Source: Lepidodermella squamata
Lineage: Eukaryota; Animalia; Gastrotricha
Length of the DNA stretch: 64,000 bases
Assembly (NCBI GenBank): GCA_047495785.1
Contig: JBLDXI010000015.1
Coordinates: 4,464,001 to 4,528,000 of the forward strand
Reading direction: 5' to 3'
The position numbers and the translations under genes were made by a program. Below, one piece after another: positions 16,409-26,959 of the stretch. The first letter of the stretch is position 1; every line of letters starts with the position of its first letter. The notes under the pieces were generated by a model that did no database searches, was not told where the DNA came from, and saw only the letters and a program-made list of their open reading frames with translations.

Positions 16409-17599
16409 ATGGTTCATACGTTAATCATCAATCACGATTTGTCATCTTCGAACCCGAACATCGACTCCGGTAAGTCATTGCGCTACAGGTGGTTTTCTAG
16501 ACGATTCTCTTCATTTTTTTTGCGTAGGCAGTGGACGCAGGCCCTATCAATCCGGTTGTTTAGGGTGCCTGTCTCGGGTGCCATGTGTCTCGTTATCCTC
16601 GTGGATTCTGTTGTCTCTCGGATGCGGTCTTTACGTTGGAGGAACCGTCGTCGCCTTGAAATTTGTTCGGGAACTTTTTCACCCGGGTGGATCGCTCAAC
16701 AAAACATCACCTCTATTGTAATTCCTTAATTTTTTTCGCGAATTTTTCGATATAAATGATTTATTTATAGATTTTTCCCGTACTTCGAATATGCTGCAAT
16801 TGGAGTGGCGGGGCTCACTACGTTACTCGGGACCATGTTCCTAATAATTAATCACTTCTCGAGCGGTGAAACCAGCCGGCACACCCTGGTAACACCCGGC
16901 CGAAATGCGGGCGTTCGCTGCTGTGACGCGTTCTGCCTCATGCTTGCCTACGTGTTGCAACTCATCTGGACGCTGCTACTATGCATTCACGCGTTGCCGG
17001 TGTTAATTCTGTTAACGACCAGCTGGCTGCGCGATCCTACGCTACAACGCTGTATCGATCTGCGCCATTTCGGTATGCGAGCGAAGGCCGGTTCAATCAT
17101 CATGGTGACGAATCCTGGCATCGATTACAACAACACTGGAACGCATAATTCAACTGTTTCATACACGCTGAACGCCCCAGCTGCTACATCGGCTCACTTT
17201 TGCGGACGAGACTTGATCACCTACGAAGAAAGGGTACGTGTCCCTAGGTCTTGGTGATTTTTTAAATTAATTTTTAAATTTTTTTTAGAGTTTTACTTTG
17301 CTTACTGCATTTGGCTTGGCGTTAGTCGGAGCATTTCTAGTCATTATTGCGATGGTTTGTAATTAATTACACGATTCAAGCGCCACATTTTAATTATTAA
17401 TTAATCCTTACAGCTTAACTTCATCATCTGCCTAGCCGGAAACTTCAAACACGTGAAAGAAATCCGCCATTTGCCGTACACTCAGGACAGTTGCGGCGAC
17501 GATTACATGGACGGTCATAATGGCATGATGATTCCGACGAATGGCAACGGCATGGACCCGGGTACCTCGGCTAAAATGATGCTGAATACTTCGTTGTAG
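16409..17599 (+). CDS. Tetraspan M6/proteolipid (PLP/DM20 family) protein
   Basis: Spliced translation has GCLGCLSRVPCVSL, four hydrophobic segments, CIDLRHFG and a C-terminal ...NTSL*. Confidence 0.8.
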
Positions 17600-19283: not shown

Positions 19284-19607
19284 GAAATTAAACAGCTCTC
19301 CGCAGGTCATTATAGATCCAAGGATTCGAGTTAACAGCAGCGGAAATCTTTCTCGGCATCATCAACATTCTGGTATGCATACAAGGAATAGATTTAGAAA
19401 AGTCAGTCATTCAGCCAGCCAGTCCTTTTTGCATCACCTCGCTGTTTCGAATTAAATTTCTTTGTTCACGCGCATATTTGTTCACACAGATGCACGGAGT
19501 GCGCGGATGAGAGCGCACTTCGTTGAAAATAGTAGCGTCGCAGAAATGACCTGCAGTAAGGCATTTAGCGATCTGAACTTCATTTTGTTTATCTATAATT
19601 TTAGCGA

Positions 19608-20574
19608 ATGGCTGATTCGGATCTGCAGTTGTTTATCGAAGTCATCAGTGTTTTTAATCGGATGGGCCCCCATACTCGCCGATTGGCAGTCGAAACAATT
19701 GCACGAGAGCGTCAGCTAGCTGTAGGAGAAGAACTCCCTGTTGTAGTCGTCGATGAACCACGCGCTCTAACTCAGACCAGTCAGCGGCCAACGTTCGAAG
19801 AAACTTCGATTCGTGCAGTTCGCTCGTCTAGTGATGAATATTCTGCTCAAGTTCTCAAGAGAATGAGGGCACCGTACACGCAATTTTCAAAAGATGAACT
19901 TGCTTTGCTGGAGAAAGTAATATATACTTGACTCACCTGTAATAGTTTAACCTGTGTCCCATACTCAAATAGTTGTTTCGTTCAACACATTACCCCACGA
20001 AACAGCAGGTCGAAGAATTGGCAAGAAAGTTGAACAGATCCGCGAAAAAGGTGAGCGCCTGGTGATTAGCACTCACGCTAGATAATTGAATTACATTTTA
20101 CGATCATATTGTTTGGTGATGCAATGGGATGACAAAAGCGTTTTGTATGCCTCAGATTTTTGGGTGGTTCATTCGTAAAAGGCAGATATTTCGGCTCAAG
20201 TCTAAACCTCCGGATTCGAATCCGGATTCGCCCGACCTTTCTGACTCGGCAGTGAAGATTCTGTGGAAGGTATCGTGACGTTACTAATGACTCTTAGTCT
20301 TGCAAGAACTAATGCACATTTCAGGCATTCGATACACTTCCTCGCCTAGGTGATCGCCGCGCTAAAACTCTCGCTGAGAAACTCAAACTGCCGAAATCTC
20401 AGGTAACTATACGATATCAATTTCTACTTAGATCTGCGGACTGTGATATCTTTATGGGAAACGACATCTTTATCGCCTCTCATTGCGTAAATTGAATTTT
20501 TATATTTTGTTCAACTGTAGATTCGAGCATGGTTTGCCAATAGAAACAATGAGATGGCGAAGAAACTTGGTTGA
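19608..20574 (+). CDS. Divergent double-homeodomain protein A; 5 coding exons
   Basis: HD1 RMRAPYTQFSKDELALLEK|LFRSTHYPTKQQVEELARKLNRSAKK|IFGWFIRKRQ. HD2 LSDSAVKILWK|AFDTLPRLGDRRAKTLAEKLKLPKSQ|IRAWFANRNNE. All introns are phase-0 GT-AG. Confidence 0.85.
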
Positions 20575-20618
20575 TGACGATCCAGCTGACAGCGGGGAAT
20601 TGTTGTTATTCCGCGGGC

Positions 20619-21160
20619 CAGAGGTGGAAACAGGTCGGAAAAACTCAACCCAACCCGATCGGCGACCCAACCGGCACCCAGGTCACCCACCGGCAACCCA
20701 AACCGGTAGAAAGCCGGTGTACCCACGCCGGTTTACCGGCTTTTTACCGGCTTTTTACCGGCTTTTTACCGGCTATTTACCGGCTATTTACCGGCTATTT
20801 ACCGGCTATTTACCGGTTTCAAGAGCACGTTTCCCAAACAAAAACAGCGTGAATCATGCAATCGCTCTCTTTATAATTCAAAATGCCTTTCAACCACTAT
20901 GAATCACCAAAATTCTAAAAATCAATTAGCGCAGGCCACTGATTGTTGATAAAAGCTTCCTTTCTACGCCTGTCACGAAGAATTTTTCGCGGAAGTCTCA
21001 CGACCGGTTCTATTCGCTAAATTTATGGCTTTCATGCCGAAAATTCCAATTTACCGGTCAACCGGCTGGAATTTAGTCAACCCATACCCAACCGGCGACC
21101 TGGCCCAACCGGCAACCGGGAGACTTACCGGCCGGTCAACCCGACCTGTTTCCACCTCTG
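20619..21160. mobile_element. hAT-superfamily MITE (542 bp)
   Basis: Perfect 20-bp TIRs CAGAGGTGGAAACAGGTCGG / CCGACCTGTTTCCACCTCTG, perfect 8-bp TSD CCGCGGGC (20611-20618, 21161-21168), and many ACCGG subterminal motifs. Confidence 0.92.
20732..20816. repeat. 11-bp tandem repeat (TTTACCGGCT[T/A]), about 8 copies, inside the MITE
   Basis: Directly visible in the sequence. Confidence 0.9.
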
Positions 21161-21297
21161 CCGCGGGCATATTGCATTTTTCCTTAACACTTGACACTTG
21201 ATCACAATTCAACCACGATCATTATCAATTATGATGACTTGATAATTTACATTTCGATGTAGTATTATTGATTTCACGTTTCACGCCTTTCGCTGGT

Positions 21298-22403
21298 ATG
21301 GCAGCGGCGAACGATGAAACCGCGCTGTTCGTTGAATTTTGTAAAAAATACCGGATGCTCCCCGAGCTAACTAAACGCCGAGTTCTCGAAGTCGTGGAAA
21401 GCATATGCTTTCTCTCTCCGTCCGTTTCATCCAATCAACCAGTCGATCCTGGTAGTGGAAATCAGATTTCTGCAACGGAAACGGCGCAGGAGGCACATGA
21501 GGGTGATGAGACAACAAGATTGGCAGTGGATGATTCGACAATCAGCGCAGATGAGGAAATTACTGGTGTCACTGACGTTAGAAAAGTTAACAGGTCTGAT
21601 GGGTCGCCAGAAAGAAAAGTTGTGGAACTTCCGCATCGCATCGTCACAGGAGATTTAAGCCGTCCTCCGATGCGGCAAAATGTCGGGATTGGTTCGCGCA
21701 TTTTTTCAGTGGCTGGTCTCGCCTTCGTGAAAGAGGTTTTTCCCTTCCAAGTTTTTTCAAGGAAAATGTGACATGTTTGTTTTTGCCTATAAGCAATTCA
21801 AAGTGAATCCTTATCCGACAAAGCAGCAGTTTATAGCAATGTCTCGAACTTTGGGATGCAAGGTTTTCCAGGTATCAATTATCAAGCCGTTGTTTTGCTT
21901 ATTAGTTTTCATGATTTTATCCTGCTGAACGATTCTTCTTGTCGAGTCACCTTACAGGCCTTGAATAAAATTTTCCTGTTTTGCAGCTGAAAACGTGGTT
22001 CGCATACCAGCGTCGGTTCGATGGCTTGGCGAAAAAAAGGTTTGAGCTCTCAGAGAAAATTGCAATGGAAGCTGCTGGTGTTTCTAGTCCTGAAGAGCTG
22101 GAAGAATTTCGTAGGCGCGGCTGTTTCAGCGAGAAGGAAGCTGAATTCTTAGAGCAGGTACCTAGCTTTCTGTACGAATAGCTTAATTGTATGGCAATGT
22201 TTTTTAAAAGGAATATCAGCGATGCCCCAAGCCATCGAAGTCTGAGGTGTCTGTAATTGCTAACAAATTGGGCTGCAGCGATCGGCGGGTTAGTGAAATC
22301 AATCATGTTTGCCGGTTTATCTCAATTCCTATTCTCCATTCAGGTGGATATATGGTTCATAAACAGATTAAAGGACGAAGAAGATGACCAACAGACCGTG
22401 TGA
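21298..22403 (+). CDS. Divergent double-homeodomain protein B; 5 coding exons
   Basis: HD1 SRIFSVAGLAFVKE|QFKVNPYPTKQQFIAMSRTLGCKVFQ|LKTWFAYQRR. HD2 RRGCFSEKEAEFLEQ|EYQRCPKPSKSEVSVIANKLGCSDRR|VDIWFINRLK. Same intron positions as gene A. Confidence 0.85.
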
Positions 22404-22741
22404 TGTATGGCGAGCGTGCGAGTAAAATCACGAATAAAACTGTTCCTCTTTCTTATCTTTTCTTTGGGAATAGTGGAAATCTTCTAAGCTCCAATATTCG
22501 GAAATTGATCGCTCCAATTTAAAAATCACAAGATGCGCGAACATTCATCGGGCGGATGAGCTCAAAAACTTACCTCAACACGCAATTTTCTCGAGTTGTT
22601 TACAGTAGAGCCAAACCGACGTATTGTTGTTGTTTTCGAACAAAATCTAGTTTATTTAGCTGCCGGCATGCTGGAGCAGTTCATACACTGAATGCATGAA
22701 AATAAGAGACTGCGAGGGCGCATTCCTTGAATTTGAACAAA

Positions 22742-24289
22742 ATGCCGTCACCGGATTTTTTCAGAAGCGATCTCTATCGATATGGGCACATGATAGCCCT
22801 TAGCGCTCTGGTTGTAACATGCACAGTTATTTACTTTGCAACAAATAATACGTCGATATCATCAGTTCTTTCAGCCGCTCTTCGCACTGTTAGTGACTTG
22901 CCGTTACCAGGCGAAGATGAACAACAGCCGGATCCGAATAGCCAATATTCCAGCTTTTTCGACAAACCTTATAAATTGCAAGAGGAGGCACCTGCTACGC
23001 TAATCGTCCGGCCGAACATTGCTATCTACGAGGAATCCTGCAATAAGCTGTTCGAAATAGTAAACTGTTCCAGTTACAGCTTCAGATCGGACCAAATTAA
23101 TAAAAAATCAGTTTCAATGAGTGCGAATGGCGCTTTGGATTTCAGTCATGTTGTTTTGATTGTACACTATGCGGATCGAAATATGTACGCCTCGGCTGAA
23201 AGCACCTACGCACTATATTACAGGTATTTTCGAATGAGGTATCTCAGTAATTTTTTAATGCTTTCTTCGACAGAGTTTTTGCTGATGTTTTATTCTGCGG
23301 CCCTGATGCAGAAGACTCTCAGTTTCGAAGCTTCATAAACAATGGATCACACGAATTCTATAGATCCGCAAAATTCATACCTTACGGAATTTATGACTCG
23401 AGATCTGATGGAAATCCGTATCTCTGTATTTCAGTGGCTTCGGAAATTTACCCATCAATCGCGAATGACTACAAGGGCATTCTCCTCCTGACGGACAGCG
23501 TGGCCATAAATTATTGGAATTTTCGCAACTTGTCACTCGAGCGAAATTGGCTTGTCGAAGTTTCTGAAGACGTTGCTTTCGACGTTGATACGGTGAGATC
23601 ATTACTCTTTTTGAAAACTTCATTAGCACTCGTTTTCAGGGTTACATCTGCAATGGTTCGAATTTGACCAATTTTATCGATTGCAACCCGAATCGACCGG
23701 CGAATCTAAGCGGAAACCTGGTCAAAGTTCAAGAATTTTACAAAAGGCTGCACCACTTGTTTTCAATCAGTTACCACAGATCGGATAATGTGGCATTAGC
23801 TGCTGAATTCCCACATCCCAATCGAAGATTAGACAACTGGCCCGAATACTGGCTTCAGGTTCATCGGGCTCTCTCAAATGCGACGGGAGGTAGGTAATAA
23901 TGCTTCGAGGCTCAGGGTCTATTGCGGGATTTTTTCTGTAAATAGGTGAACGTCGCTTGAGAGTTGGCGATTCCAAAGATCGGCGATCTATCATCTATAT
24001 TACTCAAAAGAGTCTCAAAGATTCCGTACCACTGCTCGAGCTTTTTGGAAGGTATAAGATTCCGTCGGAAATCGCTGTGCCAACCGTGGTCAGAAGTATA
24101 TCTAGAACAAATGGGGTTGAAATCTTGAACATTGCTACTCCGCAAGTTCGGAAGTACTTTGCGAGATCTATTCGAGTAAAATCAGCAGACTTCGCGAGAA
24201 ATCTCAATGGGACGAGTGACGCCAAGGAGGCAAGTTGCCTGTTCTGCCAAGCACTACAGATGGGATCATTTTATTCTCAAATGACTTGA
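22742..24289 (+). CDS. Type II membrane protein related to the STELLO/DUF288 C-terminal domain (putative glycosyltransferase-like)
   Basis: N-terminal TM, then VVLIVHY, VLFCGP, YKGILLLTDSVAINYWNF and IIYIT...F....IPSEIAVPTVV. These match motifs recalled for this family. Confidence 0.6.
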
Positions 24290-24534: not shown

Positions 24535-26959
24535 TCATACCTTTATAGTTACTGCCATTGTTCTCAATTTTTGTTCTTTCTCTTTGACGATTTCGGCGCG
24601 GCGAGCTTTGAAAAATGGCTTGTAGGTCAATCCGACGAATCCAGCCGATAGCAAGAAGCATACAGCGCCGAAAACGTAAGCATACACTGGAGACAGCGTA
24701 TCCAACCAGGCTATAATAAATTCAAAGGTTAACCGTCGCATTCGATATATCACAGCTTACTGGGTAAAATGAATCCCAAAATCTGTACAAAACCCTGAAT
24801 GCACAGAAACCAGCCGAACGAAGCTCCGGCATTTTCGGCACCATACATGTCGCGAACGATAACCGAGCGCATTGTCACCAGGGGAGCGATGAAGAAACCG
24901 TAGACCAAAACAAAGGTGACAAACGAAGCATCGCCTAAAAACATGAGGTGCGGGAAAATGAGCAGAGCGATGGCAGACACAACGTGGCCAATGATGAAAA
25001 TCCAGTAACTGGTAAAAATAGCGTATTTGAGGCCTAGATCGCCTAATTTGCCGGTAACTAGACGGCCAACGGCGTTGAAAACACCCCACATAAGTACCAG
25101 GTTAAGCTGAACAACATAACTGACTCCCCACTCGGGGTTTTGTGATTGAGCCGTAACCAGCAACATTGGAACATAGTAACCTAAGGTGTGATAGATAAAA
25201 TACATACTTATAAAGTAGTGATAAATTAAAGGTAAACGATAATATGCCGATCAATCTATCAAACTAACCGACGATGGAAAAAACAGCGGCGCTCAATAAG
25301 CATAAGAATGAAGGCTGACAAACCAGCTTTGCGTTGAAATATCTGTAAAAAATAAAATAAAATAGATATACGTGATAAATGATAGCTGCGCCGTTATCTC
25401 ACTTTCTCAACACCTGAACGAATGTCAGGGGAACTTCGACGACCTGACTAGCTATCCACATCGCCGACTGGAATATGGATGAATGTTGATGGTGAGGCGA
25501 TGGATTTTTAACTGGCTCAGGTGCGTTTGGTCGAGGTTGTTCCTCTTCACTTTCGTCTTCAGAACTGTCCTCATGGATAACTTGGGTCACGCTAGTTTTA
25601 CCTGAAATAAATGTCACTTTGTCAACGAAAATCTGAAAGTAATTTCAAACTCAACTGTTAGCGCCAAGTTGTTGTTGGCGTCTTTGAGCAACTCGAATCA
25701 ACAGGTTTTCTCTTGTGATAATCGCATTGTCGAGCGAGTGGTTGGTATCTAATCTGCTTCGAATTTTGTCTTCGGATATTTTTTTCAAAATATGGCAAGG
25801 TGGGATGGGAACAGACTCTCGATCGTCTGGCGGCCGATGTTCGACTTCCTCTTCGTCGCTGCTCGCATCTTCGATAACTTGATTGTTCGGCTTTTCTGAT
25901 TCGATAGGCTCAGCTGCCTGCTCTGATATCTTGTTGATATGATGGCGATCTAGAGCCAAAAATTAGCGCATAACATAAAGGTATTATGGATATCTTACTT
26001 GGCTGTCGTTTCTTTTTCTTGGGTTTGAGGCTTTGCATAAAAGCCAATGCGCATATCACACCGTTCAGAGTGAGACCACCGAAAATCGCTAGGGAACCTC
26101 TCCAGCCGTATTCTTTGAAAACAGGAGGAATAATCAAGGAATAAAAAATAGCTCCCACCGGAGAGCCACAGGCAGTGATTCCTTGGGCCAACGCCCGCTG
26201 ATTTGGAGGGAAGTAGTCGGTAATAACAACGAAGGAAGGTCCGTAAAGCAAAGCCGATGCGATGCCTTGGAAAATTCCCAGCATGAAAAGATCGAAGTAG
26301 AATCCAGCTTGGAAGAAGTAATTGCCCCAGGCGAGTAGAAACGAAGTCGTCGAAATAAGGGATGCAAATATGATGACACGAGTTGGACCCAAAAATTCGG
26401 TCACGGCAATGCAAAGTGGGGCTGAGAAGTTTTCGAAAATAAATAAACAGTAAGGCTCGAACTTATTATTGTCATTATGCGTATGTCATTTTACTTTCCT
26501 CGATTTAGCAATAAAATAAAATGAATTTAGCTATGGTTTCAGCTTAAATCATTTTCATTATTTCTAGCCAATTACGACCTAATAATCGTGGAACCTTTAT
26601 CTGCTCAACGCACCATAATTATTTCGATCTGCGAATCTTCTTTTAGCTGTAAAATAAATTGTTCACAATCTATTTCCCTGGCATGCTCTTTGGAAGTTGC
26701 GTTGAATTCATGTTTATAGACAATTTCTCATTTGACCTCATCAATCAAGTAAAACTAAAATAATACCGAAAATTAGATAGAACGTTGGAACCAAACCGCC
26801 AATGATGGAGATTTTCCACGAGTCATATTCTGGATAGTCGTCTTCAATAAAAAGTCGAATGATTCCAAAAACGAAGCAATAGCCATCGACTACCAAGTTC
26901 AAGTAGAAGGTTGCTGCCAGTACAACCCAGCCGAAATGTAGGCCACCTTTGGCCGCCAT
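24535..26959 (-). CDS. Monocarboxylate transporter (SLC16/MCT family, MFS)
   Basis: GGLHFGWVVLAATF, ITDYFP..RALAQGI..CGS, YGWRGSLAIFGGLTLN, a large central loop, and GRLVTGKLGD. Confidence 0.88.

Follow-up and report, generated by a model that had tools for sequence, protein, structure and literature searches.

Mammalian DUX proteins have two clearly PRD-like homeodomains (HDs), both with Asn51, and a C-terminal activation domain. The double-homeobox genes of nematodes have an origin independent of DUX (PMC4448998). In C. elegans, orphan multi-homeodomain genes are known (ceh-79, ceh-82, ceh-84/ceh-85, ceh-88 and duxl-1), together with the HOCHOB genes ceh-91 to ceh-93, and the orphan multi-homeodomain genes have no orthologues in related species (PMC4448998). 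For the gastrotrich Lepidodermella squamata, the published genome paper covered Hox genes only (PMC11660948). Here we analyse two double-homeodomain genes, G1 and G2, found in a window of 64,000 nucleotides of the L. squamata genome (GenBank assembly GCA_047495785.1, contig JBLDXI010000015.1, positions 4,464,001 to 4,528,000 of the forward strand). Judging from the genomic sequence, they probably encode small nuclear transcription-factor-like proteins that belong to a wave of lineage-restricted multi-homeobox genes expanded in this genome.

Gene models of the tandem pair

The recomputed models give two neighbouring genes of five exons each, in agreement with the initial annotation, which had described two adjacent double-homeodomain genes whose domains are split by phase-0 introns at shared positions (Table 1). 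The four introns predicted in each gene are all bounded by GT..AG and all in phase 0 (eight of eight in both respects), measure 53–118 nt and, in seven of the eight cases, contain in-frame stops. The GC content is 0.47–0.48 in the exons versus 0.32–0.41 in the introns (0.47 and 0.33–0.41, respectively, for G1). The shared positions hold for all four HDs, which are interrupted between HD residues 18 and 19 and between residues 44 and 45. Both genes are single copy in the 121-Mb genome, and the two paralogues are only about 20–28% identical. At the local nucleotide composition, the chance of a stop-free frame is 4e-6 for the 210 codons of G1 and 1e-7 for the 274 codons of G2; since the frames are open despite an identity of 28% at most, selection has presumably kept them so. 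G1 and G2 are therefore probably intact and old tandem paralogues, with predicted splicing and presumed expression.

Table 1. Coordinates of the predicted features, numbered from the first nucleotide of the window
Feature	Position	Strand	Remarks
G1 gene	19608-20574	+	5 exons, 210 aa, two HDs about 4 residues apart; predicted splicing
G1 exons	19608-19916, 19973-20050, 20156-20269, 20325-20402, 20521-20574	+	
G1 N-terminal motif, residues 1-38	19608-19721	+	predicted helix-turn-helix hairpin
G1 HD1	19863-19916 (HD 1-18), 19973-20050 (HD 19-44), 20156-20203 (HD 45-60)	+	
G1 HD2	20216-20269, 20325-20402, 20521-20568	+	most divergent of the four HDs
MITE-like non-autonomous transposon, between G1 and G2	about 20616-21162	none	TIRs and internal tandem repeat
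G2 gene	21298-22403	+	5 exons, 274 aa, two HDs with a linker of about 23 aa; predicted splicing
G2 exons	21298-21735, 21794-21871, 21987-22157, 22211-22288, 22344-22403	+	
G2 N-terminal motif, residues 1-40	21298-21417	+	predicted helices
G2 HD1	21682-21735, 21794-21871, 21987-22034	+	
G2 HD2	22104-22157, 22211-22288, 22344-22391	+	
AATAAA, candidate poly(A) signal	22433-22438	+	30 nt past the G2 stop codon; read off the sequence

Homeodomain identity and integrity

The Pfam homeodomain profile PF00046 (57 positions, curated cut-off of 22.9 bits) was scored exon by exon. Three of the four 26-aa middle exons matched it at the correct profile positions, with scores of 21.1, 16.5 and 13.0 bits, all below the cut-off: those of G1 HD1 (21.1 bits, E = 2.8e-4, profile positions 18–38), G2 HD2 (E = 0.0075, positions 18–42) and G2 HD1 (E = 0.097). 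The middle exon of G1 HD2, taken alone, matched nothing in Pfam. Other weak Pfam matches (Ntox4, DUF4368, DUF413 and HTH_OrfB_IS605) each scored under their own cut-offs and were discarded as chance or generic helix-turn-helix similarity.

Profiles were also built from the pieces. The profile of the four middle exons picks out genuine HDs when run against the 121-Mb genome and, in the PDB, finds Oct-3/4, Ubx, Engrailed, NANOG and Exd; HDs make up most of its best 28 matches, the top one being a designed repeat protein, and the HDs of ZFHX3 are among the weak matches. The profile of the helix-3 pieces has 16 PDB matches, all of which are HDs, and that of the helix-1 pieces has two, both HDs. 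The HD matches of these three profiles, which include the pieces of G1 HD2, fall at the corresponding HD positions. Moreover, the core residues L/V16, F/Y20, L38, W48 and F49 are present in all four domains. Altogether, these comparisons show that the predicted pieces of all four domains are homologous to homeodomains.

The MITE-like element located between the genes has 25-nt TIRs (20614–20638 and 21141–21165) that are 92% complementary, encloses an 11-nt tandem repeat (nine units, 20710–20838) and has 50 matches across the genome, with 71–96% identity. It lies 40 nt downstream of the G1 stop codon and may thus disturb the 3′ end of G1. A transposon in or beside the 3′ end of G1 and the strong divergence of G1 HD2, with its lack of a Pfam match, would fit one or both of the predicted genes being decaying duplicates, or exon-model artefacts, that yield no functional protein. 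We consider this very unlikely, given that the five-exon frames are open (chance of 4e-6 and 1e-7) despite saturating divergence, that canonical splice sites lie at homologous positions and that the core HD residues are found in four domains out of four.

DNA-contact residues

Position 51 is almost exclusively occupied by Asn in extant HDs, and Asn51 specifies the adenine at base 3 (PMC3460184). As reported in the initial annotation, Asn51 is lost in the HD1 of both proteins, which read W48 F49 I50 R51 K52 R53 in G1 (WFIRKR) and W48 F49 A50 Y51 Q52 R53 in G2 (WFAYQR), but kept in both HD2s, which read W48 F49 A50 N51 R52 N53 in G1 (WFANR) and W48 F49 I50 N51 R52 L53 in G2 (WFINR). The two proteins thus share a complementary pattern, with Asn51 lost and Arg53 kept in HD1, Asn51 kept and Arg53 lost in HD2. 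Asn51 and Arg53 occur together in none of the four domains, a feature that bears on canonical function and not on the fold. In G1 HD2, the N-terminal arm is acidic instead of basic (SNPDSPD); G2 HD2 has R3 and R5, and an acidic tail. The earlier proposal that HD1 may have an altered or lost specificity stands insofar as the adenine-reading Asn51 is absent, but HD2 is degenerate too, Arg53 being lost in both proteins.

Because no domain combines Asn51 with Arg53 and the arm of G1 HD2 is acidic, sequence-specific DNA binding of the predicted proteins may have been lost altogether. The HD fold would then be retained and the proteins would be small HOPX-like cofactors or competitors acting via their HD surfaces and the N-terminal hairpin, with which the acidic tail of G2 would also agree. 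We regard this alternative as rather unlikely: despite an identity of about 20–28%, each HD2 still has Asn51 and Arg52 and each HD1 still has Arg53, R3 and R5 are found in G2 HD2, and Arg51 is conserved across several HDs of the arrays described below. That residues which touch DNA have been conserved in this way suggests that the proteins still contact it.

For transcription-factor-like proteins, the reading that we favour, we propose a layout consisting of an N-terminal helical hairpin, a disordered spacer and two divergent HDs, HD2 being located at the very C-terminus. Asn51 in the WFxNR motif of HD2 would contact adenine in the major groove, with a weaker backbone anchoring owing to the loss of Arg53, and Arg51 or Tyr51 of HD1, together with Arg53, would provide backbone or non-canonical contacts, or else a protein interface. 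Each domain being half-competent, HD1 and HD2 would act jointly on one composite site, and the hairpin could serve for dimerisation or partner binding.

The N-terminal motif

The N-termini of G1 and G2 can be aligned without gaps, with 7 identities over 30 residues (BLASTP E = 0.11). In a shuffle test performed on whole exons, the score of this alignment was reached by 208 of 2000 shuffles, and by 2 of 2000 when the test was restricted to the first 36–38 residues, a restriction picked after the match was seen. Single-sequence AF2 modelling predicts helices at residues 2–18 and 21–39 of the G1 motif (pLDDT 70–83); for the G2 motif, a low-confidence model (pLDDT 36) has helices at residues 3–17 and 26–38. 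A helical hairpin is predicted for both motifs. A profile of the two motifs, searched against the 121 Mb of the genome itself, matched the N-termini of G1 and G2 only. The shared N-terminal motif put forward in the initial annotation is hence present in both proteins, but the similarity is weak.

Searching outside the genome, we found no credible relative of G1 exon 1 among 1.84 billion representatives with HMMER, in databases nearly devoid of gastrotrich data. The single match (E = 4.7e-4) was rejected as due to chance: it corresponds to a tandemly repeated 24-residue motif of a 1152-aa protein, aligned with the disordered spacer. A word search with the G2 exon-1 ORF in a length window of 92–292 aa (the G2 protein has 274 aa) returned nothing, scans of metagenome contigs with exon 1 of G2 and exon 1 of G1 gave no relatives, the best score obtained for the G2 motif in the ESM Atlas (0.78) was noise, and exon 1 of either gene found only itself in its own genome. 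As a control, a housekeeping protein from the same window had one database match only, with 62% identity; since even this best control match is so distant, the negative database results carry no information on expression. In summary, the non-HD parts of the predicted proteins have no detectable relatives in the searched databases, which hold no close gastrotrich data.

Kinship of the four domains

Aligned with each other, the HD1s of G1 and G2 score 58, with 17 identities over 60 residues, and the HD2s score 28, which is no better than the cross-pairs. Over the middle exon, the best partner of G2 HD1 is G1 HD1 (9 of 26 identities). The domain duplication followed by gene duplication that had been deduced earlier is therefore supported by orthology between the HD1s, but orthology between the HD2s is undetected, so that this history draws mainly on the shared architecture and the Asn51/Arg53 pattern. 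The HD of an ancestral gene would already have been split by phase-0 introns at 18/19 and 44/45; an internal duplication of this HD would have occurred next, and then a tandem duplication of the whole gene.

The two-HD architecture raises the question of whether G1 and G2 are divergent members of an established class, i.e. ZHX/ZFHX (ZF), Compass, SPILE-B (spiralian TALE) or PRD-like DUX. The weak PDB matches to ZFHX3 HDs could be read in this way. So could the fact that, within the genome itself, PRD-like HDs come closest to the middle segment of G1 HD1 (10 of 26 identities), and that the HD2 middle segments are nearest to POU-type HDs. However, the PRD-like kinship is confined to this segment of G1 HD1, the other segments being nearest to POU-type or array HDs. 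The nearest class therefore varies from domain to domain, and we abandoned class assignment via the nearest middle segment in view of this conflict between the PRD-like, POU-like and array types. No exon matched the C2H2 zinc-finger or CMP families at E-values of up to 10, nor was a POU-specific domain or any further Pfam domain identified in the exons; no affinity to the ZF class is seen. The three-residue TALE loop between helices 1 and 2 is absent, the 26-aa exon covering HD residues 19–44 with the standard F20–P26 spacing, and Homeobox_KN matches are weaker than those of PF00046. Neither do G1 and G2 have the two PRD-like, Asn51-bearing HDs of DUX, given that Asn51 is missing from the HD1s and that PRD-like kinship appears in one segment. 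No affinity to TALE or DUX is seen in these comparisons either. Finally, the usual intron position of the PRD class is 46/47, and the introns of G1 and G2 lie at 18/19 and 44/45. Membership in any of these classes is extremely improbable.

Multi-homeodomain arrays in the same genome

The 121-Mb genome contains large multi-HD arrays (contig C54), whose proteins carry many HDs each. A GWFxRKR helix, hence Arg51, is found in five of the C54 array HDs, and in every one of these an AG acceptor coincides precisely with the HD 18/19 boundary. G1 HD1 combines both traits, its helix (IFGWFIRKR) resembling that of one array HD (VAGWFQRKR), while G2 HD1 has Tyr51 and the HD2s Asn51. Because GWFxRKR recurs in five array HDs, Arg51, as deduced from these predicted domains, is not a one-off decay. 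A profile–profile comparison between the middle segments of the pair and those of the arrays gave 93% (E = 3.4e-7). Features common to the arrays and to G1 and G2 are exons reaching from the end of one HD into the beginning of the following one, the phase-0 intron at 18/19, and a C-terminal HD that is closer to the canonical form. The arrays differ by the absence of a 44/45 intron and of the N-terminal motif, and by their many HDs per protein; furthermore, PRD-like and POU HDs resemble the middle segments of G1 and G2 as closely as the array HDs do, or more so. Note that a Hox-like gene also has the 18/19 intron; this position is not exclusive to the arrays and the pair, which weakens its value as proof of their kinship. 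The middle-exon profile also gave candidate paralogues on contigs C7 and C23; the two C7 loci were rejected, being other divergent HD genes devoid of the 18/19 intron. On the strength of the predicted genes, the pair probably did not arise in isolation, given the multi-HD arrays of its own genome, in which GWFxRKR helices and 18/19 introns recur.

Since the phase-0 introns recur at HD 18/19 and 44/45, every internal exon would be an in-frame, interchangeable HD module. Taken together with the arrays, this might mean that exons are exchangeable modules, that exon skipping produces hybrid HDs, that multi-HD genes arise by exon duplication and that the Arg51 HDs form a new, selectively maintained subtype with a non-TAAT specificity. 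We deem this joint reading unlikely; were it true, a product made of exons 1, 2 and 5 would contain a single hybrid HD, with the front of HD1 and the Asn51-bearing helix of HD2, and the same design could explain how the many multi-HD genes of the gastrotrich originated by exon duplication.

Comparison with known systems

The pair alone adds little. Together with the larger arrays, it shows a gastrotrich burst of multi-homeobox gene birth, as in C. elegans. In addition, with its clean modular exons and with Asn51 and Arg53 lost in a complementary way, the pair is a small, tractable case for studying how DNA binding is shared out between tandem HDs and how intron phase aids domain multiplication.

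The C. elegans orphans resemble G1 and G2 in having highly divergent HDs, at least two per protein, ceh-84/ceh-85 are diverged tandem duplicates as G1 and G2 are, and the first HD of the HOCHOB proteins lacks the canonical recognition-helix residues, much like HD1 of the pair (PMC4448998). They belong to another phylum, however, and sequence kinship with G1 and G2 is not shown; in addition, the pair is set apart by an N-terminal hairpin of its own and by the strict repetition of its phase-0 introns (18/19 and 44/45). Mammalian DUX shares with the pair two closely spaced HDs in a small, lineage-restricted protein of independent origin. Unlike DUX, G1 and G2 have an HD1 without Asn51, an HD2 without Arg53 and conflicting class signals, and the protein ends with HD2. 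The SPILE clade B genes are, like the pair, novel spiralian homeobox genes with two HDs per protein (PMC8524836). SPILE proteins are of the TALE class, with a three-residue loop extension and a PADRE domain (PMC8524836), whereas the HDs of G1 and G2 follow the standard 60-residue spacing, without such a loop. We conclude that G1 and G2 are probably a further instance of multi-homeobox genes that evolve fast and are restricted to single lineages, a kind of gene known from nematodes, molluscs and mammals.

Anatomy of the two genes and their surroundings

The gene models of the tandem pair (G1 and G2, each encoding two homeodomains, HD1 and HD2) were read from the sequence and then recomputed by script. 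The rebuilt models agree with the anatomy proposed in the initial annotation: all eight predicted introns are GT..AG, of phase 0 and 53–118 nt long, with in-frame stops in seven of them, and the four homeodomains are all split at the same two places, homeodomain positions 18/19 and 44/45. The internal exons of G1/G2 measure 78, 114/171 and 78 nt, each a multiple of three, and GC content is 0.47–0.48 in exons versus 0.32–0.41 in introns. Note that 3 nt upstream of the G1 ATG there is a good 3' splice acceptor, ttttag (window 19599–19610), which may belong to an intron in the 5' UTR or be used for trans-splicing; an in-frame TAG overlaps the acceptor.

The genes flanking the pair are unrelated to homeobox genes. 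Between G1 and G2 lies a MITE-like transposon, which starts 40 nt 3' of the G1 stop, contains nine 11-nt tandem units (TTTACCGGCTW) and is possibly flanked by a 3-bp GCG target duplication; it has 50 matches in the genome (71–96% identity), comprising whole copies and fragments, and subtracting it leaves a G1–G2 gap of about 170 nt. Separately, a pattern search found the 20-mer GGCTGGTTTTGAAGCAAACG identical at 22 genome sites (e.g. C1:2149679-2149698 and C15:4046096-4046115), which points to an uncharacterised dispersed repeat.

Coordinates of the pair, its neighbours (window positions) and the multi-homeodomain arrays (other contigs of the assembly)
Feature	Position	Strand	Description
Myelin-PLP/M6-like exon	16805-17257	+	Upstream neighbour
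G1	19608-19916, 19973-20050, 20156-20269, 20325-20402, 20521-20574	+	210 aa
MITE-like transposon	20616-21162		25-nt terminal inverted repeats GGCCAGAGGTGGAAACAGG...
G2	21298-21735, 21794-21871, 21987-22157, 22211-22288, 22344-22403	+	274 aa
203-aa ORF	22727-23338	+	Begins 324 nt after G2; matches no Pfam family
MFS transporter	24750-26404	-	Downstream neighbour, opposite strand
Multi-homeodomain arrays	C54 ~0.41, 0.52, 0.60-0.64, 0.94, 2.00, 2.15-2.19 Mb; C3 2.355-2.381 Mb; C23 1.35-1.40 Mb

Evidence that the four domains are homeodomains

Each exon of the spliced models served as a separate query. PF00046 matches three of the four 26-residue middle exons at profile positions 18–38/42 (E = 2.8e-4, 7.5e-3 and 0.097 for single exons); the highest single-exon score, 21.1 bits, lies below the 22.9-bit cut-off. 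A profile built from the four middle exons alone retrieved itself and known homeodomain sites from the 121-Mb genome and, in the PDB, the homeodomains of Oct-3/4, Ubx, Engrailed, NANOG, Exd/Pbx and HD-ZIP at the correct positions. Profiles of the flanking pieces behaved likewise, all 16 PDB matches for helix 3 and both matches for helix 1 being homeodomains, and L/V16, F/Y20, L38, W48 and F49 are kept in all four domains. Homology to homeodomains is thus regarded as established at the level of the fold, as judged from these exon-by-exon sequence searches.

The N-terminal motif and the search for relatives

The N-terminal motif that the initial annotation attributed to both genes is probably real and common to them, on modest evidence. 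Seven identities fall in an ungapped 30-residue alignment of the two N-termini (BLASTP E = 0.11). With whole exons shuffled, this score was reached in 208 of 2000 trials and is unremarkable; with the first 36–38 residues only, a restriction picked after the fact, it is rare, being reached in 2 of 2000. Single-sequence AlphaFold2 predicts for G1 two helices (residues 2–18 and 21–39) separated by a G/P turn, with a pLDDT of 70–83, and for G2 the same layout (3–17 and 26–38) at very low confidence.

A search of the assembly (121.2 Mb of eukaryotic DNA in 151 contigs, the window lying at C15:4464001-4528000) with the motif profile returned G1 and G2 only, exon-1 queries against the same genome gave self matches only, and a word search for relatives found none. 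The motif had no match in the ESM Atlas, and two metagenome scans yielded no relatives of either gene. The sole match among 1.84 billion representatives was rejected as a chance match driven by a repeat. When another protein of the window was used as a control query, there was a single database match, at 62% identity, indicating that the databases are without close gastrotrich data. The blank searches support the absence of known relatives but can neither show lineage restriction nor bear on expression.

DNA-contact residues and possible function

In extant homeodomains, position 51 is almost exclusively Asn, which sets adenine at base 3 (PMC3460184). Residue alignment bears out the pattern noted initially: Asn51 is gone from both HD1s, where positions 48–53 read WFIRKR in G1 (Arg51) and WFAYQR in G2 (Tyr51), and retained in both HD2s (WFANRN and WFINRL). 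Arg53, absent from the initial annotation, is present in both HD1s and absent from both HD2s. G1 HD2 has an acidic arm (SNPDSPD) and G2 HD2 keeps R3 and R5; none of the four domains has the full canonical residue set. The main rival reading is that the products are cofactors without specific DNA binding. We favour small proteins resembling transcription factors, whose two half-competent homeodomains would cooperate at one composite site, HD2 contacting bases through Asn51 and HD1 contributing backbone anchoring through Arg53 together with a non-canonical residue 51, while the predicted N-terminal hairpin may bind a partner.

Multi-homeodomain arrays elsewhere in the genome

Scanning the assembly with PF00046 gave 420 candidates and revealed, on contigs C54, C3 and C23, dense ORF arrays with several divergent homeodomains per ORF, whose exons span the end of one homeodomain into the next. 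Many array homeodomains combine an Arg51 helix (GWFxRKR) with a phase-0 intron at 18/19; several members on C54 were read individually. Genome-wide, GWFxRKR occurs in G1 HD1 and at five C54 sites: at one, helix 1 ends in ...KILEK followed directly by the gt of a 53-nt phase-0 intron at 18/19, then EF...GWFQRKR, and at the four others an AG acceptor directly precedes position 19. Arg51 is therefore read as a recurring variant in this genome, not a one-off decay. The G1 helix (IFGWFIRKR) shares six of nine residues with the array helix (VAGWFQRKR), and the middle-segment profiles of pair and arrays match with 93% probability; pair and arrays probably stem from one radiation, of which the pair would be an outlying branch. 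Three points call for caution on this kinship: the array homeodomains lack the 44/45 intron; the phase-0 18/19 intron, also found in a Hox-like gene, is not exclusive to arrays and pair; and in their middle segments G1 HD1 comes closest to PRD-like and both HD2s to POU-type homeodomains. The domains cannot be assigned to a class.

A canonical Hox-like homeodomain (C9:3742100-3742800, minus strand) is preceded by ttttccag exactly at 18/19, an intron position unusual for the ANTP class. Two NK-type homeodomains on different contigs (C48:325712-325882 and C10:2088968-2089138) have identical protein sequences, so that the two are copies from a very recent duplication or else haplotigs left uncollapsed; the scores at C14:162426 and C14:179393 are likewise identical.

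History of the pair and comparison with known families

The initial proposal of domain duplication followed by gene duplication stands as the most parsimonious reading of an inferred history, with one qualification. The HD1s are reciprocal best matches (score 58, 17/60 identities), but the HD2s are not best partners (score 28), so that the order rests on shared architecture, namely five exons alike, the N-terminal motif, a C-terminal HD2 and a common N51/R53 pattern. Change between the paralogues has reached saturation, yet each five-exon frame is still open, the chance of this from local composition being 4e-6 (G1) and 1e-7 (G2); we therefore infer from the sequences that selection has kept them open.

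Double-homeobox genes have their mammalian case in DUX, to which the pair does not belong. Orphan, divergent multi-homeodomain genes, including tandem duplicates, are already documented in C. elegans (PMC4448998), as are TALE genes with two homeodomains in molluscs (PMC8524836); G1 and G2 differ from TALE genes in having no loop extension, and from the ZF class in having no zinc fingers. The pair appears unreported so far, since the L. squamata genome paper is confined to Hox genes (PMC11660948). Multi-homeobox genes are a kind already known from C. elegans, molluscs and mammals, to which this pair adds a member.
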